DNA from: Macrostomum lignano
Lineage: Eukaryota
Direction: 5' to 3'
Assembly: GCA_002269645.1 (NCBI GenBank)
Contig: NIVC01001575.1
Coordinates: 162,691-226,690 of the forward strand
Length of the DNA stretch: 64,000 nt
Below, in pieces: positions 11,708-58,300 of the stretch. Position numbers and translations under genes: made by a program. The notes beneath the pieces were generated by a model. That model was not told the DNA's origin and ran no database searches. It saw nothing but the letters and a program-made list of their open reading frames with translations. Position 1 is the stretch's first letter. Every line of letters starts with the position of its first letter.

Positions 11708-12558
11708 CATCTATCTATGTATCTATCTATCTATTTATCCATCTATCCATCTATCTATTTATCTATGTCTGTCTATTTATCTGTCTATCAACGTGGAATA
11801 TTTATTAAAACATAATATATAATATATGTACACTAAAAATGCCTAATAGTAATGAATTTAAAGCATCCGCAACCAAAACCAATGAATGCAACAAACTAAA
11901 TAAACAGCAGTAATGGATGAACTTACAGAATACCGGATTCTACTACCGTTGGCGGATAATTAAACGGTAAACCAAAGCCAGTGAAGCAACTCACCTGCAC
12001 AAACAGCAGCGGCACAAAGGCCGAATGAAACGAGCTGAACAGGGTAGAGAACAGTATAATCTTCAATCGGCCATTGAAATCCGATTTCAACGCTTCGGTT
12101 TCGTCGCGGATTTTCTCCGGATCGCGAGAACAGCTGTGCCTGGGGCTGAAGCTGCCCTGGCCATTGGCGGCGGATGCTGAGCTTGATGTGGCACCAGAAG
12201 CTGCGGTGGCGCCGGCAGCTGCTGCTGAGGACTTTTGATGCTGCGGAGTTGACCCACCGCCGCCGCTGAGCCAGTTACGGCTCAGCAAAGTGCCAGGCAC
12301 GTGGCCATAAAAGACCAGAGCGTAAGTGATGCAGCTGCAAGATAAACCGGGTGGCCAAGGTTTATTAGTTAAAATATACTCATTGAACCTCCCATAGCAC
12401 AGCTAGGTTTCTAGAAATATGCTTAGCAGCTTAGTCTGATTAGTGAAGTACTTGTATGTACATCTGTGCATTGCTTGATAACATTATATTAATACTACTA
12501 CTGTACTACTATTACCAATATTAATACTACCTACTACTACATCACAACAACAACTACC

Positions 12559-12589
<31 letters not shown>

Positions 12590-12604
12590 ATACTACTACA
12601 ACTA

Positions 12605-12654
<50 letters not shown>

Positions 12655-12689
12655 TACTACTACTACTATTTCTACTACTACCACTACTG

Positions 12690-12726
<37 letters not shown>

Positions 12727-12845
12727 TACTACTACTACTATTTCTACTACTACTACTACTGCTTCTACTACTACTACTACTGCTTCTACTACTACTACTA
12801 CTTCTACTACTACTACTACTGCTTCTACTACTACTACTACTGCTT

Positions 12846-12893
<48 letters not shown>

Positions 12894-12956
12894 TTTCTAC
12901 TACTACTACTACTACTTCTACTACTACTACTACTATTTCTACTACTACCACTACTG

Positions 12957-12990
<34 letters not shown>

Positions 12991-13112
12991 TACTACTACT
13001 ACTATTTCTACTACTACTACTACTGCTTCTACTACTACTACTACTGCTTCTACTACTACTACTACTGCTTCTACTACTACTACTACTGCTTCTACTACTA
13101 CTACTACTGCTT

Positions 13113-13157
<45 letters not shown>

Positions 13158-13268
13158 TTTCTACTACTACTACTACTGCTTCTACTACTACTACTACTTC
13201 TACTACTACTACTACTACTAATACAATTTCTACTACTACTACTACTATTTCTACTACTACCACTACTG

Positions 13269-13305
<37 letters not shown>

Positions 13306-13472
13306 TACTACTACTACTATTTCTACTACTACTACTACTGCTTCTACTACTACTACTACTGCTTCTACTACTACTACTACTACTTCTACTACTACTACTA
13401 CTATTTCTACTACTACTACTACTACTATTTCTACTACTACTACTACTGCTTCTACTACTACTACTACTGCTT

Positions 13473-13520
<48 letters not shown>

Positions 13521-16500
13521 TTTCTACTACTACTACTACTGCTTCTACTACTACTACTACTTCTACTACTACTACTACTACTACTAATACAATTTCTACT
13601 ACTACTACTACTATTTCTACTACTACTACTACTTCTACTACTACTACTACTACTAATACAATTTCTACTACTACTACTACTATTTCTACTACTACTACTA
13701 CTTCTACTTCTACTACTACTACTACTACTACTATTTCTACTACTACTACTACTACTGCTGCTACTAAGATGCGACTACTAAAGCTCACGGATAAACCAGC
13801 AGTATGCAGTAGAGCAGCGAGGTCCTGCAGTACACAAAGTAGCTCATCCAGCAGAAAAGCGCCGCCCAACAACAAGACAGCGCGCATAGCAGGGCCAGAC
13901 AGGCAGTGAAGCAGCATCTGTTAGGGATGCTTTTAAGCTGCCGGAACAGAGTTAGCAGCAGCGGCAGGCACAGCATTGAGACCAGGTACCCGACCAGCTT
14001 GTAGTCGATAAGACGAAAATTCTGTAGAGGGGGTTTGACAGGTTAACCGCAAGTTTTGCAATCAAATTTATCTACCATTTATCTTTATCTTCATTTATCT
14101 ACCACATTTGCACATTAGTTGTACTTTTGTAATGCAGATAGAACATGCCGACAAAGAAGGGCACCCAACACCCAAGAGACAGGGGCGCCCACCTAAGAGA
14201 CAGGGGCGCCCACCTGAGAGGACAGGGGCGCCCACTTGAGAGGACACGGGCGCCCACCTGAGAGGACAGGGGCGCCCACCTGAGAGGACAGGGGCGCCCA
14301 TCTGAGAGACAGGGGCGCCATCTAAGAGACAGGGGAGCCCTCCTAAGAGACAGGAGCGCCCACCTAAGAGACAGGAGCGCCCACCTAAGAGACAGGAGCG
14401 CCCACCTAAGAGACAGGAGCGCCCACCTAAGAGACAGGGGAGCCCTCCTAAGAGACAGGAGCGCCCAACTAAGACAGGCGCGCCCACCTAAGAGACAGGA
14501 GCGCGCACCGGAGAGGACAGGGGCGCCCACCTGAGAGGACAGGACGCCCACCGGAGAGGACAGAGGCGCCCACCTGAGAGACAGGCGCGCCCACCTGAGA
14601 GACAGGCGCGCCTACCTGAGAGACAGGGGTGCCGTGCCAATTTAAGAGAGAGGGGTGCCCTCCTGAGAGACAGGCGCGCCTACCTGAGAGACAGGGGTGC
14701 CGTGCCAATTTAAGAGAGAGGGGTACCCTCCTGAGAGACAGGGGCGCCCAGCTAAGAGACAGCCAGGTGGATAACGAGGCAGTGATAAAAAAAGGAACAA
14801 AACTACATAATGTACTTACAATGGCATACTGATGATGCGAATTAGGCAGCCACCAGGTTGTCTTGTACAGGTGAATGTACTGCAGTGACATACAGCTGAA
14901 GCTGAAGAACAGCATAAAAACTGAAAATGGCAGCTCGCTATCAGCTGGAATATGAGGAATCCTGGCGTGCTTCGGCTGCACCAGCAAAGTTGCTGAGCTG
15001 GCTGACTGGTTGCTATGAGGCGAATTGTCATCTCCGGCACTGAGTGGAATTGGTTGTTCATATTTATGCACATGATTTTAATTTTTTTAATTTTTAATTT
15101 TAATTTTTGTTTGTAGTTAATTTCTTTTGCAGAGTAACACATAGTTTATCTGGCCTTTTTTTCCAAATATTTAAAAACAGACAAAGTGATTAGTTTCAAG
15201 ATTTAAGGCCCTAGACAAAGTAAGTTATAAAACTTGACTAGAAAACAGCTCATTTGCTAAATGCTTATATAAGGCTTGAAAAGAGTTTTTAAGATGCCAA
15301 GGCTGAAAGGAGATACTGATATCTTAGGCTAAATAGCTGGCTTTCTACAAATTTCTACAAATAAGAAGTCTGACAATAGTGACAGTAAAATGCTTTCTAT
15401 ATAATTTTATCTTTTTTCTTAAAAAGAAAAAAACCCAATCTAGAAGGTTATAAGATAGCTTTTTCCAATACTTTAGTTATCTAGAAATGGATCTAGATAT
15501 AGAATATAACTAATAGATGCATTTTGGTACAATTTATCAACATCTAATACTATAATATTTATAAATTCGAACATTTTAGCATATAGTCAATTAAGTAAAG
15601 GACAACTTAAAATATCATTCTGCTTGAATTTATTTAACATTTAGGCCCCTATTGCAGTCAATGGCCATTATTGCAGCATGGATTTCCCTTCAATGGGAAT
15701 TCCCTTTAATGTTGGTATAGGGCCATAGTTTAGAATACACTGAATGTATGCCAGACTAAAATCTTGCAGTTTATTTGGTATGTAACAGGGTTTATTCCTC
15801 TGTCTTTATGAACAATCCCACCGCTGGTACCAAAGTTGTAATAGTGGTTATTGTTCTCTCTAGTAAATCCTATCACTAAGTCACCAAGTTGTTACAGGCG
15901 TTTTGGCTCTCTATGAAATTATCCCACTGCTGCAACCAAGTTGTCAAAGGGCTGATTCTTCTGTCTCTTCAGATGATTCCACAGCTATCACTAAAGTTGT
16001 CAAAGGGCTAAACTCCTGTTTTTATAAATGTTGGTAGCTGCCACCAAGACTATTCTATTAATAAATTATGAGTTTATTTATCTTAGAATAAGTCTGAGAA
16101 TATTTATTAGAATAGGTCTGAGTATTTAGTCTGAGTATTATTCTTAGAAAACTATTAGCCCTGAAAGATTTTACTCCTCTGTTATTCTGGTAGCATTCTA
16201 TTTAATAATTTGGCCTGAGCAGTATTTTGGCTTACTGGTATATGTATTCTATGTACTTTGCAAGTCCTTGGGCGTTACCAAGATCAGAGGGTCACAGCCT
16301 CCGGTTATGTATTGACTTCGGATCTACTTTGTATCCTGATTGCAGCGCATGGGCATTTTGGCGGACGGCGTCCGGCGCGGATCTAATACGGCGCGGCGCG
16401 GCGCATACGGCGCGGCGTGGCGCGTACGGCGCGCGGCAATTAGTACGGCGCGGCGCGGTACTAATTAGATGCCGAGGCATTTAGGCTTGATAAGACAGTC

Positions 16501-25946: not shown

Positions 25947-42202
<16,256 letters not shown>

Positions 42203-43710: not shown

Positions 43711-46699
43711 TGTGACTATGCATGTAGGGTTGCATATTTTGTTGTTGTTATTTTAGTTTATTGTTAAACAGTTGCTAGTTATTTAGTCATTGTTTAAAGT
43801 TGAATTAATATAAAACAAATTGTGCTTTAGATTCTACTATTTAATTTAATCTTATATTATTACCATTTTATATAGTAGCCCTAGGCTTGTTGCCTTATCT
43901 TAGTAGCTAGTCTTTAGGTTGGAATAAAATGGTTTCTTACCAAGTTAAATGATGTTTTCCTTGCTATCTATAGCTACATATGCTGCAGCTTAATTAGCAA
44001 TATTGGTCAAAGTTCCCACACTTTTTTTATCTTTAAAATGACATCCAGATGAACATTGTAAATTAAATATTAAAAGAGATATGACCAAAAATACAAAAAA
44101 GTGAAATTCATTTATGGCAATCAAAAGGCACCAACCTATAGTATATTTTTCCTATCTGAAAAACACCATTTTTTAACACAAAAAATGTTTTTTAACTTTT
44201 TATTCTTTGATCAAATTAGACAAATAAGACCATTTTAGAATGGTATTACTAGGCCTACTCCTCTATCAAATGTATCTATCAAAAATATAAAACAAATTTC
44301 AAAACCTCATTGGAGTCTTTACCAAAAGTTACTTTTTTAAAATGGCACTCTGGTTGTTTTTTTAGAATGCTAGACATTGGTAATCCAGTTTCTTTTAAAT
44401 TAATCCAATATTATCAATGTTCAAATATGAAAATTTAAGTGCCAAACTAGCAATTTAGCATTAAACTTAGAGATTTAGTGTATTTAGATATACCCCAAAA
44501 ATGCAATTTTTTAAACAATTTTATAATGATAAAAAAGATAATAGTCAATAGATCATGTTTTTTTAAGTTAGATTTTTTAAGTTAGAATGAAAGCACACTT
44601 TTATGGTATCTATTAGGCCTGTCTTGATCATGAATGAATGAATTATTGGTAATTTTGGCATCCATTTAAACAAGTTAATAGAATTACAGCTCTAGTGAAA
44701 TACAAAAGATTAATTAGGCAATATCATATCAATGACACAACTAGGAGGGAGGGTGGGAAGGCAATCACTCCCCTCCCCCTTAGTTAGAGACCAAAAAAAT
44801 AAAAGGGAGGACCAAGCAAATTTTTGCCAAGAACAGAGCCACCCCATAACCCCTTCTCCTAGGTCTTTACCCTCAAGAAACCACCCCCTTCAAAAAAATT
44901 CTAGTTGCACTACTAAGCAATATCTTAGGCTTTGATACACTGTAAACTAAACTTTTTGGCCTCAAAATGGTATGCAAATAAATTTTCTATGAGTATTGAC
45001 AAATATTCTCCATTTGTTCTTCTTTGTTTTTTTGCTAATAAATTTTGTTCAACCCAACTAATACAGAAATAGAACACATTTAAAACAATCAACATCCTTG
45101 TTTAAAAAGCTTAAAGTCTTATCTTATAAATACTGTATAATGTTAACTATTAAATATTTAATTATTGTTATTTAATTCCTGAAATTATGATAGTTAAGAT
45201 TAAATAAGTTTGATTACAAAAGTTTTGAGAGTAACCCATGGCATTTGCCATTGGCATTAGTCAAGAGAAAACATTAAAAATCAATACAATTTACAATATT
45301 TTAGTGTGAATATAGTTATTGTTAAAATGAGTTTTGATATATTATATTTTAATTTGCTGAAGATGGTTCAGAAAAAGCTCTTCTTTCTTCATTGTTCAGT
45401 GGACCTACTTACCTACTTCGAAGAAATGGTCTGATTCCCACGAAGTTTCCAGCAGTTAAATTTTTTACGCAACTCAATTTAACAAACTTTGTACTAAATA
45501 GATAGTTTTGTTTTTAAGCCCGACCTTTTATTGTAAAATATGTAAGCAAGAAATGCAAAAAATTTTGCGATGCAGTCACTGTTTTGATGTTTTGATGTTC
45601 GATGTTTTGATGTTTGATGTTTTGAGTTGGACATGGTTCTGGCCTCTGGGGTTATTTCTAGCTACATCAACTTGCACTGTAGAGGAATTTGACGGTCGTT
45701 CGCACATTTTATGCAGAACAATACATTACTACAAACAATGCATTGTTGTAGGATCCTCAAAAACAGACAAAAACTGCAATAAGAATCAGCGGTCACGCGC
45801 ACTGGGACCGCTAATTATTTATCCATTGTGTGTTTGATCGAATTTCTGCCTCGAGGTGATATTTTTCAGATCTTTTTAAGCCTATTGGCCATACAGTCCT
45901 TTATATGATTTCACTGCGCTTTCATGTACAATTATATTACCTAAAACTTATTACGCAGTGCAATATGCATGCACAGCGTAGAATGGTCGCTACCCTTAAC
46001 CTTGAAATACAATACAGATACATGTTTACCCACATTTACATATCTTAGGTGATATGTTTTTATTGTTACATGTACACATTATTATATTCGTCTCTGAAAT
46101 ATTCATGCATTGCATGCACAGTACGAAAACATAATCAGGAATTTAATTAGTAATAATTAGAATTTTGGAGTATATCATTTACTTATCTCAGCTTTGAAAG
46201 TCAGCAGGTTTTTTAATTACTCATATCGTCTGCGAATTCTGTTTTCATCTCTGCTGCTTGAGTCCGTAAAAACCCTCAAATAAAATGCTTACTAATACAT
46301 TTACCAATTCTACGTGTTAAAACAGAAGATACTACCAATTGAGGGGGAGGAATTCCCACCCCTGACAATTTTTTTGCTGCGCCGGAACGGAGCAACGCAG
46401 GCACACGAAATTCAATGACACGGGCTAACTTTTTGTTGCGCACTTTAGAATCAAGTCGCCAGCCCTCCGGACCGTCGAGTTATTCGACGATTCTGCCAGA
46501 AGGTCGGAATTTTTCCATAAAGCCCTAGTGTATTCAGTACACCCCTGTGCGCCAATTAGCACTGCGCCTCAGTGCAGCCTTGCCAAGTTTCCAAATTTCA
46601 TCAGCACGTCGACCACATGTGTCTGCATCAGCTCTGACTTCGTTGGTCACTAGCCTTCACCCAGGTGGAGCTTCTGGACCCTCAACAGCTGTGGCACCA

Positions 46700-47303
46700 G
46701 GTGACTATGGACACCCTGATGCGGATTTCTCTAGTTTCGCCGATCAAGCCTCGACAGTGGGCAAGAATCAACCGTCAGACATTCTCAGCTAGTCTCTCAA
46801 GCATTCCGTCATCATCCTGACGCCGTCGGCTCCTTCAACAGATTACACCAGGTGAATATGAACAGCCTGATAAGAATTTCTCTAGTTTCGCTGATCAAGC
46901 CTCGACAGTGGGCAAGAATCAACCGCTGGACATCCTCAGCAAGTCTCTCAAGCATTCCGTCATCACCCCGACGCCGTCGGCTCCTTCAACAGATTACACC
47001 AGGTGAATATGAACAGCCTGATAAGAATTTCTCTAGTTTCGCTGATCAAGCCTCGACAGTGGGCAAGAATCAACCGCTGGACATCCTCAGCAAGTCTCTC
47101 AAGCATTCCGTCATCACCCCGACGCCGTCGGCTCCTTCAACAGATTACACCAGGTGAATATGAACAGCCTGATAAGAATTTCTCTAGTTTCGCTGATCAA
47201 GCCTCGACAGTGGGCAAGAATCAACCGCTGGACATCCTCAGCAAGTCTCTCAAGCATTCCGTCATCACCCCGACGCCGTCGGCACCTTCAACAGATTACA
47301 CCA
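46700..47303 (+). repeat. Four tandem 151-bp units (three near-identical) inside the foldback element
   Basis: ggtga starts at 46700, 46851, 47002, 47153 and 47304. Confidence 0.95.
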
Positions 47304-47462
47304 GGTGAGTAAGGACACCTGAGCGTGATTTTTCATCATGCTCTTAACATCTCAGAAGCTCTCAAATTTTTTAAGCACGGAACTTGCCATAGTTAAGCTT
47401 GAACTCATGTTGCTGTATATTTATATTATTATTACACATACTTTTATACATACCAGTTACAT

Positions 47463-47689
47463 ACATATTTTATTCGACAAGCTGTTTAGTTTATTCAACT
47501 ATAATATTGAACCCAATTTTTATGCAGAAAGGGTTATGCTTTTAAAAAATGAAAAAAACCGATTGAATTTACTGGCACGCAAATGAAATTTAGGTTTTTT
47601 CATTTTTTAAAAGCATAACCCTTTCTGCATAAAAATTGGGTTCAATATTATAGTTGAATAAACTAAACAGCTTGTCGAATAAAATATGT
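47463..47689. repeat. Near-perfect inverted repeat of about 96 bp with a loop of about 32 nt
   Basis: catattttattcgacaag...gaaaaaaacc (47464-47560) pairs with 47593-47688, one A indel. Confidence 0.9.
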
Positions 47690-48804
47690 GTGAAACTCGT
47701 AGTCACCTGGTGTAATCTGTTGAAGGAGCCGACGGCGTCAGGATGATGACGGAATGCTTGACTGACTAGCTGAGAATGTCTGACGGTTGATTATTGCCCA
47801 CTGTCGAGGCTTGATCGGCGAAACTAGAGAAATCCGCATCAGGGTGTCCATAGTCACCTGGTGCCACAGCTGTTGAGGGTCCAGAAGCTCCACCTGGGTG
47901 AAGGCTAGTGACCAACGAAGTCAGAGCTGATGCAGACACATGTGGTCGACGTGCTGATGAAATTTGGAGGCTTGGCAAGGCTGCACTGAGGCGCAGTGCT
48001 GATTGGCGCACAGGGGTGTACTGAATACACTAGCGCTTATGGAAAAACCCGACCATCTGGCAGAATCGTCGAATATCTCGACGGTCCCGAGGGCTGGCGA
48101 CTTGATTCTTGTTTGAGAAGGTGCGCATCAAAAAGTTAGCCCGTGTTCTTGAATTTCGTGTGCCTGCGTTGCTCCGTTCCGGCGCAGCAAAAAAATTGTC
48201 GGGGGGGGGGGGGGGGAATTTCACCCCTCTTGGTAGTTCAACGGGCGGAAAATGGCTTGGCATTCCTACTGTTAATCACGTTTATTTGCCTTGCAGAAAA
48301 TATGCGTAAAAATGTAACGAAAATTTTCCCTCAAAAAACGTCTAAGCTAGCAAGCATCGTGGATACTCCTGAAGGTTGATATTGTTATGGTTGTATGTCT
48401 GCTTAAACACTTACGTGTAGTAGTCTTAAAATCCTAAAGTGAAACACACGCGTAGAATATTTACGTAACAAAATTCATAATTTTTTACGAATAAAAAAGG
48501 TAAAACATTTTGTGCGTCATTTACGAATTTAGTTTCTGAATATTTTTCCATCTTAAATACTTAAGTATATATTGAATATTTGGTCCACTAATGTGCCCTC
48601 TGTTCAAAGAAAATTTTAGGCATAAATTAATGTAGAAAATAGTTATTTGTGAAAAAATTTTCTAACTTTTTCGAATTCTTTCGTAAAGAAACTGCCTAAG
48701 AGTGACGTAAAAAAATCCCAAAAACTTACGAACTTCCGAAGCATCATTGATGCATCAGTTCGAAATCCATGTACTTTTGATGGGTTTCGACCTTTCAGCC
48801 CCCT

Positions 48805-49620
48805 TGTGGGGAAGCCTTCGGGCCTCAGGTCTCAGAAATTAATCAATTAGAGTCCTGGCCCCCCACTCCTGTCAGATGGTCAGCCCCATGGTAGCTTGAT
48901 CGTGTGGCGAGCAGCCTAGGTCCTATAGCTAAGAGAGGGACAGCGAGAGACAAGCAGGGAGAATTTTGAAGGTAGAGATCAGCTAATCCGCAGATTAACT
49001 AACCCGCTGCCACCAGCCCGTGCGTCCTGGCTCACCACACCGGAACTTTCGAAATCGGGCTTCCGACTAGAGGGCACTATGAGCACTAGACTAGAGCACT
49101 AGAGCTTTTCCGATTAGAGCACTTACCTGCCAACTAGTGTCTTTTTGCTGTCAATCTCAAAGTCATAGCCGATGATAAGGGACACTGCTGGGACTAGATC
49201 GCATTGGCCATCGCATTGGGGACTTGTGCAGGGGATTCTTGCAGTGGCGAGACTATGGGGTAGTTACATGTACTATTACATTGCTAAATACGAAGAATTG
49301 TACTTTTGGCCTTCAACGCGCCAACTAGCCTCTCATAGCGCTGATGATAGACTAACTCTAACCTCAGAGACCGTATGATTCATTACCGGAGCCGCTTGGC
49401 AAACCTAGAGTGCACAAAGTACACCTCTGGCGCCGATTCTGCACTACTGGCAGTTTCGCTAACTGATTCGATAGATTGATCGACTGAGAACTGCCTTGCC
49501 ATTGGTCCACTATGACCGGCGCCTACTAGCTTAGCCACTCATCTGAGCCATCGGCGAACAAAGAAATAAAACCGATAAAAATAACTGTCAGATTTAACCT
49601 TCTCCTTGAATCACTTCACA
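48805..49620 (+). mobile_element. Possible solo LTR
   Basis: Starts TGTG, ends CACA, AATAAA at 49565-49570, GC richer than flanks; TSD not convincing. Confidence 0.3.
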
Positions 49621-51338
49621 CCTCAGATTAAATTGGAGCTTCAGACTACTAGCAGTATTATTGAATGATTTCTGCCTCAGTGTAGCAGCACTACTGAACA
49701 AAATGAGCAAAAGTGTGCGCCTAATCCAGCCACTGAAACAGGGGACAGATAGGGAATCACCCAATCAAGCAAGTCTAGGTAGCCTCTCGCCCAACCAATC
49801 AGAAACTCAACAGCCTGAGACCAGGTAATCCACAGTTGACCGAATCGGCTTAGTGCTTCGCAGCTGTAGACCCGGCATGATGCTGATGTCACAACCTTCG
49901 CAGATAGCTAGCAGGTGATGCTCTTAACTTTGTTCACTGCTGATGACCGGCGGAATTTGTCCTTGATGATGATGGGGGGAGTCGCAATCCGGGGATCAAG
50001 AAACGACGGTCGGGCCAGGGAGAGAGCAAGTTCCTGGCCGGTCTCCAGAAAGGGTTAGTCCGAGCGGGCCAAAAACACCGGTTTAAATAGCCGCCAACTG
50101 GACCGCAGTTTGTTATAATGGAACACGTCGATTCTGATTGGCTGAGCCGAAAATGAGCGTCGAATTTTCTGATTGGCTGAGCTTGTTGCCACCAAAAGTC
50201 ACGTGTCTGGGAGATCCTATCAGTTCCCTCGGGGTCGTAAAAACATGACAGGTGCGGCCATAAATCAATCAAAATCGCAACAAAATGATTTATGACCTTT
50301 CGTGTAGAATTACAAAAATTAATGAAAAAATATACATTAGAAAGCTCTTATCAAGTAGAAAGTGAAGGTAATGAAGAGAAATCGCTAATCGCTAATCCCA
50401 ACGTACTTTTAGGGGTAAAACGCATAGCTGTCAAAGCTGTCACACGCTTGAGTGAACACGAACAATAGGCCCTGACCTCATAAATCTTGATGGCCTGTCA
50501 AAATGATGAGAAAAAAGCTATCATTCGCATCCTCTCAGACCATCTGGCGCCAGCCCCAGCACTGAGTGAGGCGCGGGTGGCTGTCAGACCAGCTCAGACG
50601 CAATGATTTATGACCCAAAAGCAGCAAAAAGCCGCGCCTATGTTATTATAACTACAAGTATGGAAGATTAACATAGCTACAGAAGTCCTACTAGTACGCT
50701 CGTATGAATTCTAGAAAAATTACAAAAGAGGGAGAAAAACGCCCATAGCCTGCTGTTAGTAGGCTAGCAAGTTTGGAACCCATGTGCGAGCGTGAAATTT
50801 GGAAAAAAGTGCGTCCTCATCACTTTACCATACCATCTTTGCTTTTGTTAATCTTCTTGAGTCGGTAAAACCCTCAGTAAAATACGTAAAAAAGTTCGAA
50901 AAAAGTTGCACCAATTTTTTACGTACGATTTCGTTTATTTGTCAGGCGGGAGAGCGGGCACGACACGAGAGAGAGGATAAAAATATCATTACATGTATGT
51001 AAAATAATTAAAATAGCTATTCATGCTTGTACGCCAAATGTAATTCCAAAAGTATGTGCATGTTGTTAGTGCGACATTTAATTTGAAATAATGAAAACCG
51101 ACCTCGTGTATATTTTTAATATATAATACATTTAATAACCTATAATATAGATCGCTGCTGAATCGCTCCTCTTGTACAGGTACCCGTGCAGGATGAAGAA
51201 CTATCGTGTCTCTACATTGTCCAGGTTAAAAGTAACTATAGATACGGAGTTAAGCGATCAAAAATCGTTTATTAGCGTTCAGTAGCATTCGCTTCGCTGT
51301 CAGAGAGTAGCGAATATGCTAAAAAGAATGTACATTAG

Positions 51339-51662
51339 CTACTCGTAGTCAATTTTCAGGTCAAGGCGCAGATCTTTGCAGCGCCTGAAATAGGCCGAGT
51401 AGCTGGACAGGCCCTGAAACCAGGTCTTTACATCGTCGTTGCATCCCGGATCGCAGATGCTGGCCTCGGCTCGATTGCATTTGCACTCCTTGCCGCAGAT
51501 GTTTGTGTAGGTGAAGCTGGAGCCTTTGATTTTGCACAGCAGAACCGGATGGAAACAAGCCGGAACATTGTCGTCCTCGAGGGAAAGCTGGAAGGATGGC
51601 TCCGGCAGGACTGAAAGCAGCAGACCAAAGCACAGAAGCAGCGAGACTGTAGCAGTTTTCAT
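51339..51662 (-). CDS. Small secreted Cys-rich protein, 107 aa, family not recognised
   Basis: gtcaaaATG start; signal-peptide-like MKTATVSLLLCFGLLLSVLP; 8 Cys in the mature part; acceptor-like ttaattttttgcag upstream; AATAAA (51268-51273) about 65 nt after the stop. Confidence 0.75.
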   Translation of the reverse strand: MKTATVSLLLCFGLLLSVLPEPSFQLSLEDDNVPACFHPVLLCKIKGSSFTYTNICGKECKCNRAEASICDPGCNDDVKTWFQGLSSYSAYFRRCKDLRLDLKIDYE

Positions 51663-52419
51663 TTTGACAGTGCAGTTTTTTGCAGTTTTCCTGTTTTTAG
51701 TTAACACCGGCTGCAAAAAATTAACTAGATAGTTTCTGCTAGCTGAAGCCTGCACTGATATGTAGGCCTCTAACCAATCCTGCCTGCTGCAGTTATGCAG
51801 AGCTTTGAGGATTGGCTAAACATGTAATCAAGGGGTTTTTGCGGTTCGATCGCCATCAGCTTAGTTCTGGTTTACCAAGCAAATTGTATGGTCAGCATCT
51901 TTCTTCACTGCATCAGTCAAGATTTACTATCTATCCAGCTAGCTAAGTCAAGGCCAAGTTTTTAGCTGCACGCAAAGTAATTATAGACGCGCAGAAGATG
52001 GAGAGGAAAGGAGAAACCTGGAACTGCAATTTGTTCTTGTATTCTATCAACACTTGTAGCAAGCCTAACAGCTTACACTTCTTCACTTCCTGTGTTGGGC
52101 GAAGAATCTCGAAATTCTTGCATTTTTTACCGGACTTGCGCTACATGTACAAGATGCATGTAGAAACTGATGGTGGAAACCAGCAACGGAAGAAGTGAAA
52201 CAATGAATGCTTTTACAGTACATAAAACGCTTTGTTAAGTTATTATTTTTAAAAATATCAAATCTTTCAGTAGAGCAACGTTACGAAACTGCGAACTGCT
52301 GACGTATTTCATTTGTCTATTTACAAAAAGCTGTTAAATATGCATGTAGAAAGATAAAAATTGAATAAAATTTCCAATATCAGCACAACATTACGAGCGT
52401 ATCGATGTACACGATCTGG

Positions 52420-53435
52420 CAGATTAGGGCGATTCCCTGTGGCAGATTAGGGCGATTTCCTGTGGCAGATTAGGGCGATTCCCCGTGGCAGATTAGGGCA
52501 ATTCCCCGTGGCAGATTAGGGCGATTCCCCGTGGCAGATTAGGGCGATTCCCCGTGGCAGATTAGGGCAATTCCCTGCGGCAGATTAGGGCGATTCCCTG
52601 TGGCAGATTAGGGCGATTCCCTGTGGAAGATTAGGGCGATTCCCTGTGGCAGATTAGGGCGATTCCCTGTGGCAGATTAGGGCGATTCCCTGCGGCAGAT
52701 TAGGGCGATTCCCTGTGGCAGATTAGGGTGATTTCTGTGGCAGATTAGGGCGAATCCCTGTGGCAGATTAGGGCGATTCCCTGTGGCAGGTTAGGGCGAT
52801 TTCTATGGCAGATTAGGGCGATTCCCTGCGGCAGATTAGGGCAATTCCCTGTGGCAGATTAGGGCAATTCCCTGTGGCAGATTAGGGCAATTCCCTGTGG
52901 CAGATTAGGGCGATTCCCTGTGGCAGATTAGGGCAATTCCCTGTGGCAGATTAGGGCAATTCCCTGTGGCAGATTAGGGCGATTCCCTGTGGCAGGTTAG
53001 GGCGATTTCTATGGCAGATTAGGGCGATTCCCTGCGGCAGATTAGGGCAATTCCCTGTGGCAGATTAGGGCGAATCCCTGTGGCAGATTAGGGCGATTCC
53101 CTGTGGCAGGTTAGGGCGATTTCTATGGCAGATTAGGGCGATTCCCTGCGGCAGATTAGGGCAATTCCCTGTGGCAGATTAGGGCAATTCCCTGTGGCAG
53201 ATTAGGGCGATTCCCTGCGGCAGATTAGGGCGATTCCCTGCGGCAGATTAGGGCGATTCCCTGTGGCAGATTAGGGCGATTCCCTGCGGCAGATTAGGGC
53301 AATTCCCAGTGGAAGATTAGGGCGATTCCCTGCGGCAGATTAGGGCAATTCCCTGTGGCAGATTAGGGCGATTCCCTGCGGCAGATTAGGGCAATTCCCA
53401 GTGGAAGATTAGGGCGATTCCCTGTGGCAGATTAC
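52420..53435 (+). repeat. 23-bp minisatellite, about 43 copies, each with TTAGGG
   Basis: Unit gcagattagggcgattccctgtg. Confidence 0.95.
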
Positions 53436-54234
53436 GCCTGCAACTTACCGTATTTTACAAACTCGAGTTTAGAAAAATAAAAGTCCGACACGGGATGGAT
53501 TGTGGGAAGAAAAAAAGAAAATGCTCGATTAGGGATAGAATTATCAGATTAAAATATAAGTATATGATCAAGGCACAAAGTGCATCGAATGAAAACTCAA
53601 GATACAAAATAAGCATAAAAGTGATGCATCAGCTATAACTTTTTCTTATAAAAAAATCAGCCGAAATAATTTTGTTCGAAAGAAAACGCCAACCAAATTA
53701 CTTACAGTAGCGTAGAATGCCTACTGAATAAGATATTGAATGAAGTGACTCGCTAATAATAAAGTAATTACAAGGGGAAATGCTGACACAGGAACTGTAT
53801 AAAACTTACAATAAAATTTAGAAGAGACTCATGTACATAATAAATCAAACAATTTACAGGACTAGATTAAATAGGTAAACCGGATACGAAAAAAGATCAT
53901 ATGTTATACTATGATATTGACAGTTTTTAAATAAAATATTCCAAGGAAATGAAACCGCGTTCAGCTGTGTAAATAATTGGATACTTTAATCGACACAGGT
54001 AACTGAAAACTGTGCAAATTTGAGATTCTTTTATAAATACGAGCTAATTTCAGCTAAAACTTACAATTAATTATGAAGCTTATAGCGAATTGAATAAAAG
54101 AATTATGAAAACACTCTCGAATGATCTAAAGCAATCATGAAGACTTTCTGGAGTAATTAAAGAAGGCATGGCTATTCACTTGTCCATGTACTAAAAATAT
54201 AATCTAAATGATGTTGGAGTGATGACCAGTTACT

Positions 54235-55370
54235 GAAGAATCTGAGGGAGCCAAGATGACTTAATAATGAGGGAGCCATGACAACTGAAGAATCTGAGAG
54301 AGAGAGCCATGACAACTGAAGAATCTGAGTGAGAGCCATGAGAACTGAAGAATCTGAGGGAGAGCCATGACAACTGAAGAATCTGAGTGACAGCCATGAG
54401 AACTGAAGAATCTGAGAGAGAGCCATGACAACTGAAGAATCTGAGTGAGAGCCATGAGAACTGAAGAATCTGAGAGAGAGCCATGACAACTGAAGAATCT
54501 GAGTGAGAGCCATGAGAACTGAAGAATCTGAGAGAGAGCCATGACAACTGAAGAATCTGGGCGAGAGCCATGACAACTGAAGAATCTGAGGGAGAGCCAT
54601 GACAACTGAAGAATCTGAGGGAGAGCCATGACAACTGAAGAATCTGAGTGACAGCCATGACAACTGAAGAATCTGGGCGAGAGCCATGACAACTGAAGAA
54701 TCTGAGTGAGAGCCATGACAACTGAAGAATCTGAGAGAGAGCCATGACAACTGAAGAATCTGAGGGAGAGCCATGACAACTGAAGAATCTGAGAGAGAGC
54801 CTTGATAACTGAAGAATCTGAGGGAGCCATGACAACTGAAGAATCTGAGAGAGAGCCTTGATAACTGAAGAATCTGAGGGAGCCATGACAACTGAAGAAT
54901 CTGGGCGAGAGCCATGAGAACTGAAGAATCTGAGTGAGAGCCATGAGAACTGAAGAATCTGAGAGAGAGAGAGAGCCATGACAACTGAAGAATCTGAGGG
55001 AGAGCCATGACAACTGAAGAATCTGGGCGAGAGCCATGACAACTGAAGAATCTGAGGGAGAGCCATGACAACTGAAGAATCTGAGAGAGAGCCTTGATAA
55101 CTGAAGAATCTGAGGGAGCCATGACAACTGAAGAATCTGAGAGAGAGCCTTGATAACTGAAGAATCTGAGGGAGCCATGACAACTGAAGAATCTGAGAGA
55201 GAGCCTTGATAACTGAAGAATCTGAGGGAGCCATGACAACTGAAGAATCTGAGAGAGAGCCTTGATAACTGAAGAATCTGAGGGAGCCATGACAACTGAA
55301 GAATCTGGGCGAGAGCCATGACAACTGAAGAATCTGAGTGAGAGCCTTGATAACTGAAGAATCTGAGAGT
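54235..55370 (+). repeat. 27-31-bp minisatellite starting just 3' of the DCAF6-like stop
   Basis: Unit gaagaatctgagagagagccatgacaact. Confidence 0.95.
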
Positions 55371-55385
55371 AAAACAGCTGACTAA

Positions 55386-58300
55386 TCAACTCGGCAACAG
55401 GCCAGCCTCGAGAAGGCCCGCAGGCGGTGGGACCGCCATATTTGGCATTGCGGCCACCCTGGCGCTGAGCAGATCTGAGCAGCCAAGCATTTGCTGGTTC
55501 CTTCTGGCCAGCTCTGTGGCATAAGCCAGATCCGACTGATCTCGCTGTCCAGCATCCTCGCCATGCTGCATCGGGGACCAGATTTTCACATCGCGCTCCA
55601 TGCCGCTGGTTGCTAGGCACAATAATTGAGGATGCGCGGCAACCCTGTTCACCAGGCATTGGTCCGCTTGTCGAGCAGCAATCAAGCTTGAGTCGGAGAT
55701 TCGCCAGACCATCAGATGGCCGCAGTCGCTGCCAGATAAAATGTGCTCGGAGCCCCAGAACGTGGCTTGTTGAATGCAGGTTCGAGAGTTTCTGTGACCG
55801 CGATACTCTCTGAGCAGGGCATAGCCAGCTGGACTTGACGAGCTGAAAATGATGCACATTTTTACTGCTAGATAGAATCAGAGTTTTGCGTACGAGTCAC
55901 TGAATGATCAGAAAAATGAGTCACTGAATGATCAGAGGATATGAGTCACTGAATGATCAGAGGATATGAGTCACTGAATGATCAGAGGGATATGAGACAC
56001 TGAATGATCAGAGGATATGAGTCACTGAATGATCAGAGGATATGAGTCACTGAATGATCAGAGGGATATGAGACACTGAATGATCAGAGGGATATGAGTC
56101 ACTGAATGATCAGAGGGATATGAGACACTGAATGATCAGAGGGATATGAGTCACTGAATGATCAGAGGGATATGAGTCACTGAATGATCAGAGGGATATG
56201 AGTCACTGAATGATCAGAGGATATGAGTCACGGAATGATCAAAGGGATATGAGACACTGAATGATCAGAGGGATATGAGTCACTGAATGATCAGAGGGAT
56301 ATGAGACACTGAATGATCAGAGGGATATGAGTCACTGAATGATCAGAGGGATATGAGCCACTGAATGATCAGAGGGATATGAGTCACTGAATGATCAGAG
56401 GGATATGAGTCACTGAATGATCAGAGGGATATGAGACACTGAATGATCAGAGGGATATGAGACACTGAATGATCAGAGGGATATGAGACACTGAATGATC
56501 AGAGGATATGAGTCACTGAATGATCAGAGGGATATGAGTCACTGAATGATCAGAGGGATATGAGTCACTGAATGATCAGAGGATATGAGTCACTGAATGA
56601 TCAGAGGGATATGAGACACTGAATGATCAGAGGGATATGAGACACTGAATGATCAGAGGGATATGAGTCACTGAATGATCAGAGGGATATGAGTCACTGA
56701 ATGATCAGAGGGATATGAGTCACTGAATGATCAGAGGGATATGAGACACTGAATGATCAGAGGGATATGAGTCACTGAATGATCAGAGGGATATGAGTCA
56801 CTGAATGATCAGAGGGATATGAGACACTGAATGATCAGAGGGATATGAGACACTGAATGATCAGAGGGATATGAGTCACTGAATCATAAAGTCAGTAAAA
56901 ATTATCACATTAATAAGCCATGGAATAAGTCGCTAAACCATCGGTAGAAGCTCAGACTAAAAGCTAAAAGAACAGAACCAACCTGCAGGCCATCTCAGCG
57001 TCTTTGCTTGACCCGGCCGCCACGTCGAACAGGCAAATGGAGCCGCCAGCATAAGAGGCCAACAGTCTATGGCCAGAATGGTCAAATTCTAAGCTGCTAA
57101 TTCGGAAATTACTGCCAGCTGATTTCTGAGCAGTCCTGCTCAGCCAGACTGGCTCAGCTGAGGGCAGGCGGCGACGATCGAATTCCAAAATTTCTCCGTC
57201 CCGTGTGGCAACAAAGAGGCGACGTCCGGCGCTGATTGGATGAAGAGCGGCGGCTGTGTAGCCAGAGAGGCTGTATTGCGAAGTGAGTTTGGGCAATTGG
57301 TTTTTAGGCTCTTTAGTTGAAACTTTTTTTCGATCAATTTTTTGGTTAATTAATGACCCGAAGGTTTATCAGGGCACCCCTGATATAAATTGAATTAGAT
57401 TCAAATAAATTGCTATGTGCGCACACATACACCAAGGACCACTATAATATAACAGGAAGTAAAACTCAAAGATCGTGCAATCTTTGAGGCCGATTTCTTG
57501 GAAACAATACACTGCGGAGATAGGAAAAAATAGACGAAGATCGTTATTCTAATTTAGCATGCACAGCATGTTAATCTGCTGTATCTTATATAGCTGTGTA
57601 GTGAAAGTTTCATTATTATATTATATTCTTTTTATTGATAGATTTATGTCTCTGCCCCCCCCCCTGACGTGAATCCTGGCTATGCGCCTGATTGCACTTG
57701 CGAGTATTTAAAATTTTGGGCCAATAAAATATAACAGAATAACATGTTGTGTATGCTTAATTAAAATAATAGTAATCTTCACAGCCCCAGATCAAATGCG
57801 ATAATTTATTTTGGAATGAAAAATGACTAGCAATTAACGGCCCCGGTCGAGACGCGACGAGAATGAAATAAAAAATGTTGAATAAACTGCATGCGGCATC
57901 TGACCTCTGATCCTTGACGTCTCAGCCATTCCCCCGTAAGTCTTGATATCTCAGCAATTCCCCCGTAAGTCTTGATATCTCAGCAATTCCCCCGTAAGTC
58001 TTGATATCTCAGCAATTTCCCCATAAAGCCTTGACATCTCATCAATTTCCCCGTAAAGCCTTGACATCTCAGCTATTCCCCAAGTCAGTCTTGAATTCTC
58101 AGCAATTCCCCTGTAAGCCGTAAACATACGCACTCACACTGATGTGTGAAAAAACTTTGTGTTAAAAACTCTGAATAAAAATAATAAATTGCTTCGCTCC
58201 CAGACTCAACTAGCTCAGGAAATACTATACGAGTATTAAAGCAGAAAAATGCTCAAACCTGCAGTGCTGATTGCCAAGCAGCAGCGAACAGCCGCAGTGC

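Follow-up and report, generated by a model that had tools for sequence, protein, structure and literature searches.

A single-exon Macrostomum lignano gene predicted to encode a small secreted orphan protein with eight cysteines

A 107-codon open reading frame (ORF) in a 64,000-nucleotide stretch of the Macrostomum lignano genome (hereafter the window) is probably a real gene, whose product would be a Macrostomum-restricted, secreted, four-disulfide extracellular protein of about 10 kDa. This explanation is built on what was observed, namely an ORF with coding-type composition that is under purifying selection and has no detectable homologues. Its N-terminal signal peptide would route the 107-residue product into the endoplasmic reticulum (ER) and would be cleaved at about residue 17 or 23, and oxidative folding would then yield an extracellular protein that is compact and mildly acidic, weighs about 9.6-10.2 kDa and has its eight cysteines in four disulfides. 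The most likely extracellular role of the protein would be that of a stable binding protein or a product of gland secretion, its disulfide scaffold supplying stability and its surface loops specificity. Secretion, disulfide formation and any extracellular role are predicted from the amino acid sequence, and the compact fold and disulfide pairing are presumed on the same basis.

The gene and its predicted product

The ORF lies on the minus strand at window positions 51662-51339, from an ATG at 51662-51660 to a TAG at 51341-51339 (Table 1), and its full translation is MKTATVSLLLCFGLLLSVLPEPSFQLSLEDDNVPACFHPVLLCKIKGSSFTYTNICGKECKCNRAEASICDPGCNDDVKTWFQGLSSYSAYFRRCKDLRLDLKIDYE. A previous sequence-only reading of this DNA had singled it out as an intronless gene for an orphan secreted protein; the coordinates given there were exact but the minus strand went unstated, and we confirm a single-exon ATG-to-TAG reading frame. 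The start codon used is the first in-frame ATG, in the context caaaATGa.

Table 1. Positions of the gene, its parts, candidate flanking signals and neighbouring genes in the window
Feature	Position	Strand	Remarks
CDS, complete, single exon	51339..51662	minus	107 codons + TAG; protein identical to PAA57999.1 from that protein's first Met
Predicted signal peptide, residues 1-17	51612..51662	minus	hydropathy and sequence; cleavage site predicted
Cys-rich core, residues 36-95, eight Cys	51378..51557	minus	computed spacing; four disulfides presumed
Candidate 5' leader, 48 nt, ATG-free	51663..51710	minus	one paralog difference at 51690
TTGCAG, putative spliced-leader trans-splice acceptor (preceded by tttt)	51711..51716	minus	matches [T/C]TNCAG
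AATAAA polyadenylation signal	51268..51273	minus	65 nt 3' of stop; invariant in all five copies
Myosin motor exons	33654-34193, 34732-35229	minus	downstream of the 8-Cys gene
WD40-repeat protein gene	~55.9-60.8 kb	minus	upstream of the 8-Cys gene

A signal peptide starts with a positively charged n-region; an uncharged, hydrophobic h-region 7-15 residues long follows, and the polar c-region after it has small side chains at positions -1 and -3. The N-terminus of the 107-residue protein, MKTATVSLLLCFGLLLSVLPEPS, opens with Lys2, continues with an uncharged hydrophobic run from A4 to L19 and then reads PEPS. The Kyte-Doolittle mean of its best 12-residue stretch is 2.91; among the 34 ATG-initiated ORFs of at least 100 amino acids in the window, the sole other equally hydrophobic one is encoded by a tandem repeat, and the remaining Cys-rich or hydrophobic ORFs all lie in tandem repeats. 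A search for a second hydrophobic segment found none, the 15-residue hydropathy staying at or below 1.1 past residue 10. The charged n-region and hydrophobic h-region, with no further transmembrane-like segment, are those of a classical secretory protein and bear out the signal-peptide-like N-terminus described before. Cleavage is predicted after Ser17 (S17 before V18; Leu at -3, Ser at -1, Gly at -5) or alternatively after Ser23 (S23 before F24), which would place the end of the signal peptide at 51594; the -3/-1 pattern of the predicted cleavage site is not textbook.

Cysteines occupy residues 11 (in the predicted signal peptide), 36, 43, 56, 60, 62, 70, 74 and 95, and these computed positions reproduce the mature spacing C-x6-C-x12-C-x3-C-x1-C-x7-C-x3-C-x20-C that had been proposed. 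Depending on whether it starts at residue 18 or 24, the mature protein would have a mass of 9.6-10.2 kDa and a pI of 5.3-5.8 (11 Lys plus Arg vs 12-13 Asp plus Glu); the Cys core (residues 36-95) taken alone is basic, with a pI of 8.8. Neither an N-glycosylation sequon nor KDEL is present in the 107 residues, and the sole dibasic pair, RR93-94, sits immediately N-terminal of the last cysteine; the lack of processing sites makes a neuropeptide precursor a disfavoured reading.

Both flanking signals that had been pointed out are present. Downstream, the AATAAA (51273-51268) is unchanged in all copies of the gene; upstream, a TTGCAG lies 48 nt 5' of the ATG as a candidate acceptor and conforms to [T/C]TNCAG, the most enriched motif at M. 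lignano spliced-leader acceptor sites (PMC8629364). The acceptor remains putative because the GenBank partial CDS begins 39 nt rather than 48 nt 5' of the ATG, about 8-9 nt downstream of the AG of TTGCAG. The M. lignano spliced leader terminates in ATG (PMC8629364), and if the transcript were trans-spliced at TTGCAG (exon start 51710) this ATG would be in frame, 48 nt amounting to 16 codons without a stop. Were it used, it would add a basic 17-residue N-terminal extension to the protein, and the paralog difference at 51690 (AGG/AGC) would be non-synonymous under such a reading.

Genomic copies, annotation and purifying selection

The translation matches M. lignano PAA57999.1 (hypothetical protein BOX15_Mlig020110g4, partial) at 100% identity; the gene is already deposited in GenBank as a hypothetical protein. 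The ORF is found on four contigs of the assembly GCA_002269645.1 (Mlig_3_7): NIVC01002426.1 (L001), NIVC01001611.1 (L002), NIVC01001575.1 (L003) and NIVC01002103.1 (L004). Across the 2.3 kb compared, the window is identical to L003 and has 3 differences vs L002 and L004, these three copies differing at 0-3 positions, whereas L001 is a diverged copy, at about 3.5% in non-coding DNA. Four copies of which one is diverged agree with published work describing the genome as recently polyploid and present mostly in three paralogous copies, with SNPs amounting to 2.2% genome-wide and 1.1% in CDS (PMC10733133). Because most four-copy blocks in the assembly are reported to be over-represented three-copy regions (PMC10733133), one near-identical contig among the four may be redundant.

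Every Mlig_3_7 gene model goes back to a transcript, either derived from RNA-seq or assembled de novo (StringTie/TACO/TBONE, with RPKM >= 0.5 or de novo overlap), and transcripts that cluster at >=95% identity carry a common name prefix (PMC5730564). The existence of the model Mlig020110.g4 in such a transcript-only annotation is therefore indirect evidence of transcription, which we infer from the rules of the annotation pipeline. The sequence-only reading had named a lack of transcript evidence as a result that would speak against the gene, and what we find is a transcript-derived GenBank gene model.

Comparison of the window copy with L001 revealed 4 substitutions and no indels in the 324 nt of the CDS. 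All four differences (51642, 51507, 51432 and 51429) are synonymous third-position transitions, corresponding to 0 changes at 247 non-synonymous sites (dN) and 4 at 74 synonymous sites (dS). The flanks, taken as 500 nt upstream and 450 nt downstream of the CDS, carry 33 substitutions in 947 aligned positions (3.5%) plus 24 gap columns, and the difference in divergence between CDS and flanks gives a Fisher p of 0.036. At the flank rate about 8.6 non-synonymous changes are expected where none is observed (Poisson P = 1.8e-4). The probability that four of four changes are synonymous is 0.003 when all single-base changes are considered, 0.017 for transitions only, and about 0.007 when weighted by the 2:1 transition:transversion ratio of the flanks. 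The annotated frame is the only one that is both open and unchanged between the two copies. The CDS divergence of 1.2% is unremarkable in itself when set against the genome-wide CDS paralog SNP rate of 1.1% (PMC10733133).

Composition points the same way. GC content by codon position is 0.50/0.41/0.69 in the CDS (GC3 0.685, GC2 0.407), compared with 0.58/0.43/0.58 and 0.63/0.37/0.68 in the nearby myosin exons, and 1.3% of random 324-nt windows show a GC3-GC2 excess as large; overall GC is 0.53 in the CDS vs 0.42 and 0.35 in the flanks. All-synonymous differences next to flanks diverged by 3.5%, together with exon-like periodicity, indicate a constrained coding gene and not a chance ORF. We conclude that the ORF is under purifying selection in the annotated frame, on evidence that is good rather than overwhelming because the sample of substitutions is small (four, between recent paralogs). 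The dN/dS check that had been proposed thus came out, for these recent paralogs, at 0 non-synonymous and 4 synonymous changes.

Homology searches

Searches with the protein retrieved essentially itself. A word-indexed search of 5.8 billion proteins returned the gene only, and when 1.84 billion representatives were scanned in full with HMMER, nothing came up but the gene and one spurious protein, P0002. Despite its E-value of 4.6e-7 we rejected P0002: it is a Cys-free protein of 1211 amino acids made of repeats of about 73 residues, and its score adds up seven repeat matches, each of them weak, to the signal-peptide/linker region of the query. P0002 illustrates how repeat proteins inflate HMMER whole-sequence E-values. 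With the full, mature (residues 31-107) or core sequence as query, none of the 24,736 Pfam-A models reached E<=10, with the proviso that HMMER filters can drop very weak matches, and phmmer found nothing at E<=10 among all PDB sequences, for the core segment alone as for the whole. A combined pattern and tblastn scan of JGI metagenome contigs yielded 174 pattern-matching stretches, none of which was confirmed.

No paralog was detected by tblastn within the 64-kb window, nor in the protein databases besides the four allelic or homeologous copies, so that the paralog search suggested earlier came back empty; this absence within the species is meaningful because the M. lignano proteome and raw contig ORF calls are part of the searched databases. 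By every sequence method used, the gene therefore stands as a lineage-specific orphan, in agreement with the sequence-only reading, and a clear match to a known family, which that reading had named as contrary evidence, appeared in none of the sequence searches. To date the gene has been met in M. lignano alone; restriction to this species in these searches may equal restriction to Macrostomum or Macrostomorpha, since other Macrostomum genomes and transcriptomes lay outside them.

The protein shares with invertebrate secreted Cys-rich proteins in general the common architecture in which a single compact domain bearing 6-10 cysteines comes after a signal peptide. It differs from the named classes, as none of defensin/CS-alpha-beta, macin, Kunitz, Kazal, EGF-like, ShK, three-finger/Ly6, WAP, TIL, SVWC or knottin profiles matches it in Pfam at E<=10, which is in keeping with the earlier failure to fit its spacing to defensin, Kunitz, Kazal, EGF, ShK or three-finger patterns. 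To our knowledge, a contiguous C-x3-C-x-C block without a CC doublet falls outside the consensus frameworks of the defensin/CS-alpha-beta, macin, SVWC, TIL, WAP, EGF-like, ShK and three-finger classes.

The proposed AlphaFold and Foldseek check gave no usable fold match. The AlphaFold2 single-sequence models reached a mean pLDDT of 51.1 (full length) and 53.4 (residues 31-107), which is low confidence. With either model Foldseek found no match in the PDB at E<=0.001, and the matches listed included no disulfide-rich fold. The best match, the FtsH periplasmic domain (E = 0.15), was dismissed as noise from the model with pLDDT 53. At such pLDDT values Foldseek matches are uninformative for or against a known fold.

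Alternative explanations

A fortuitous ORF in transcribed repeat-rich intergenic DNA, taken up by a TransDecoder-based annotation and without function, would account for a window rich in minisatellites that generate long spurious ORFs, for a GenBank entry flagged both 'partial' and 'hypothetical' and for the lack of any homologue in protein searches, and about 20% of non-trans-spliced M. lignano genes are indeed non-coding (PMC8629364). However, the ORF is not derived from repeats, all four paralog differences are synonymous against the roughly 8.6 non-synonymous ones expected at the flank rate, the CDS is free of indels vs 24 gap columns in the adjacent 950 nt, its GC3 periodicity is like that of real exons, and a textbook-like signal peptide combined with an even number of cysteines (eight) is unlikely to arise by chance; we hold a non-functional ORF to be very unlikely. 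Small disulfide-rich domains often keep their fold while the sequence signal fades, and the gene might instead encode a protein of a known disulfide-rich family that has diverged too far for profiles to detect, for instance a non-classical Kazal-like inhibitor or another inhibitor or ligand fold, which would act as a tight-binding inhibitor or ligand. Two short Kazal-like strings speak for this reading: GSSFTYTNIC-x3-C (GSSFTYTNIC-GKE-C), which we take to resemble the Kazal motif G-x-D-G-x-T-Y-x-N-x-C-x2-3-C, and PGCNDDVKTW, which BLASTP pairs with PLCGSDNKTY of the turkey ovomucoid third domain (OMTKY3). Yet the ovomucoid alignment is 10 residues long and has E = 0.11 in a single one-to-one comparison, and the two strings are mutually inconsistent, since they correspond to different Kazal cysteines. 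Kazal domains follow the spacing C-x(1-7)-C-x(5-7)-C-x6-Y-x3-C-x(2-6)-C-x(9-17)-C, whereas our protein has C-x8-Y in place of the conserved C-x6-Y. Neither Kazal nor any other Pfam family matches at E<=10, and no PDB Kazal chain is retrieved at E<=10 by the 8-Cys query, whereas one classical Kazal query, ovomucoid, retrieves at least 56 distinct chains, including the non-classical rhodniin, LDTI and infestin; Foldseek likewise listed no disulfide-rich fold and no match at E<=0.001 for either model, both being too poor to count. The protein is thus like the Kazal domain (PF00050/PF07648) in being small, secreted and disulfide-rich and in the strings TY-x-N-x-C-x3-C and P-x-C-x-x-D-x-K-T-[YW], but has eight cysteines instead of six, an incompatible spacing and no HMM or phmmer match at E<=10. 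On the weak 10-residue match, the conflicting motifs, the wrong spacing and the lack of a profile match we rejected a Kazal identity, and we consider a diverged member of a known family unlikely.

For a secreted protein of this kind, the functions that had been put forward (toxin, antimicrobial, seminal fluid or signalling) are guesses. Small secreted Cys-rich orphans are typical of seminal fluid in other animals, and the product could be a reproductive secretion, either a prostate seminal-fluid protein or a female-tract or egg-associated gland product, that would be transferred or deposited at mating and would act on partner, sperm or egg. Prostate-limited transcripts of M. lignano often lack a BLAST match (31 of 76) and often encode a signal peptide (38 of 65 in which an ORF could be identified; Weber et al., 2018, PMC5977470), and germline and reproduction genes are enriched for species-specific ones, at 48.5% compared with about 35% of ORF-bearing gene clusters overall (PMC5816591). 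The gene resembles that set, Mlig-pro1-76, in coming from the same species, where many members are small, bear a signal peptide and lack a BLAST match or conserved domain (PMC5977470); unlike it, Mlig020110 is not in the list of transcripts mapped by in situ hybridisation (ISH). Table S11 of Brand et al. (2020; PMC7336406) maps all in-situ-tested transcripts, including Mlig-pro, to Mlig_37v3 identifiers (format Maclig_37v3@MligNNNNNN.gN), and the absence of Mlig020110 from the complete table means that it was not ISH-tested and makes no statement on prostate expression. Nor was Mlig020110 found in the searched parts of other M. lignano supplements, a weak point that assumes stable identifiers between versions, and peptide and DNA strings of the gene were not found in the searched supplements of Weber et al. 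(PMC5977470). The dN of 0 between paralogs gives no sign of rapid adaptive change, albeit over a short timescale. By analogy, a reproductive gland product would be a reasonable guess, although we judge this specific assignment unlikely to be correct. Many invertebrate antimicrobial peptides and toxins are likewise built from a signal peptide and a compact multi-disulfide domain, and the basic Cys core (residues 36-95, pI 8.8) would suit a defence or offence molecule, that is, an antimicrobial peptide or toxin from epidermal, rhabdite, pharyngeal or gut gland cells. Against this, the whole mature protein is acidic (pI 5.3-5.8), so that the antimicrobial role guessed earlier fares badly in comparison with classical cationic antimicrobial peptides; its roughly 85-90 residues exceed the size of most antimicrobial peptides and toxins; it matches no Pfam defensin, macin, ShK, ICK, Kunitz or three-finger model; and the gene shows neither family expansion nor tandem paralogs, one or the other of which toxin and antimicrobial loci usually show. 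Given its acidic pI, its size and the unexpanded family, a classical cationic antimicrobial peptide or a venom-type toxin is disfavoured, and we regard a defence or offence role as quite unlikely. A more speculative proposal, which we find doubtful, is that the 8-Cys framework is a new disulfide-rich fold, of recent and possibly de novo origin in the Macrostomum lineage, used as a secreted effector, possibly a partner-manipulating ejaculate protein or other gland protein. Other gland, matrix or signalling functions would make up the remainder.

Place among lineage-restricted genes

Setting specific functions aside, we return to the preferred reading of a secreted, disulfide-bonded protein encoded by a real gene. 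What is found here is what defines an orphan gene: self-matches only in the searches, constraint with exon-like codons, and transcription inferred from the annotation. Like the M. lignano-specific genes of Grudniewska et al. (2018; PMC5816591), it is an ORF-bearing, transcript-derived model with no detectable homologue elsewhere; unlike most of that class, it comes with explicit evidence of purifying selection between paralogs, a predicted signal peptide and an 8-Cys architecture. The gene is a reasonably well-supported case of a lineage-restricted small secreted Cys-rich protein and will not surprise a specialist. Orphan status is shared by about 35% of M. lignano genes (PMC5816591), so the find is modest. 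It has no bearing on long-standing open questions; if confirmed, it would be one well-supported addition, single-exon, constrained and secreted, to the large Macrostomum-specific pool. Because RNAi, in situ hybridisation and transgenesis work in M. lignano, a short intronless orphan whose secretion signal is clear makes an easy test case, which could reveal how lineage-restricted secreted proteins gain function and could yield a new small disulfide scaffold.

Surroundings of the gene

Both neighbouring genes, the myosin and the WD40-repeat protein gene (Table 1), lie on the same strand as the 8-Cys gene, which is alone in the repeat-rich interval of about 17 kb between them. The gene call for the myosin neighbour in L001 carries Myosin_head, MYO6_lever and Myosin-VI_CBD domains. 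We considered and discarded an operon shared with the WD40 gene upstream: some 4 kb of minisatellite sequence lies between the two genes.

The window is packed with minisatellites, with 44 TRF rows at a score of at least 200. Arrays include those at 52417-53434, 54232-55369, 55894-56884, 12493-13766 and 29650-31374, and their units range over a 23-bp unit in 44 copies directly upstream of the 8-Cys gene, 29 bp in 40, 26 bp in 38, (TAC)n in 424 and 22 bp in 79 copies. Such minisatellites give rise to long spurious ORFs, often Cys-rich, in several frames.

Just downstream of the 8-Cys gene, a segment of 4.9 kb (45999-50886) is absent from L001, where its flanks are adjacent. It contains a palindrome (46355-48209) with arms of up to 351 nt and 96% complementarity, centred on a 151-bp tandem repeat (46695-47447), and the segment could represent a mobile element of the foldback type or else structural variation between subgenomes.
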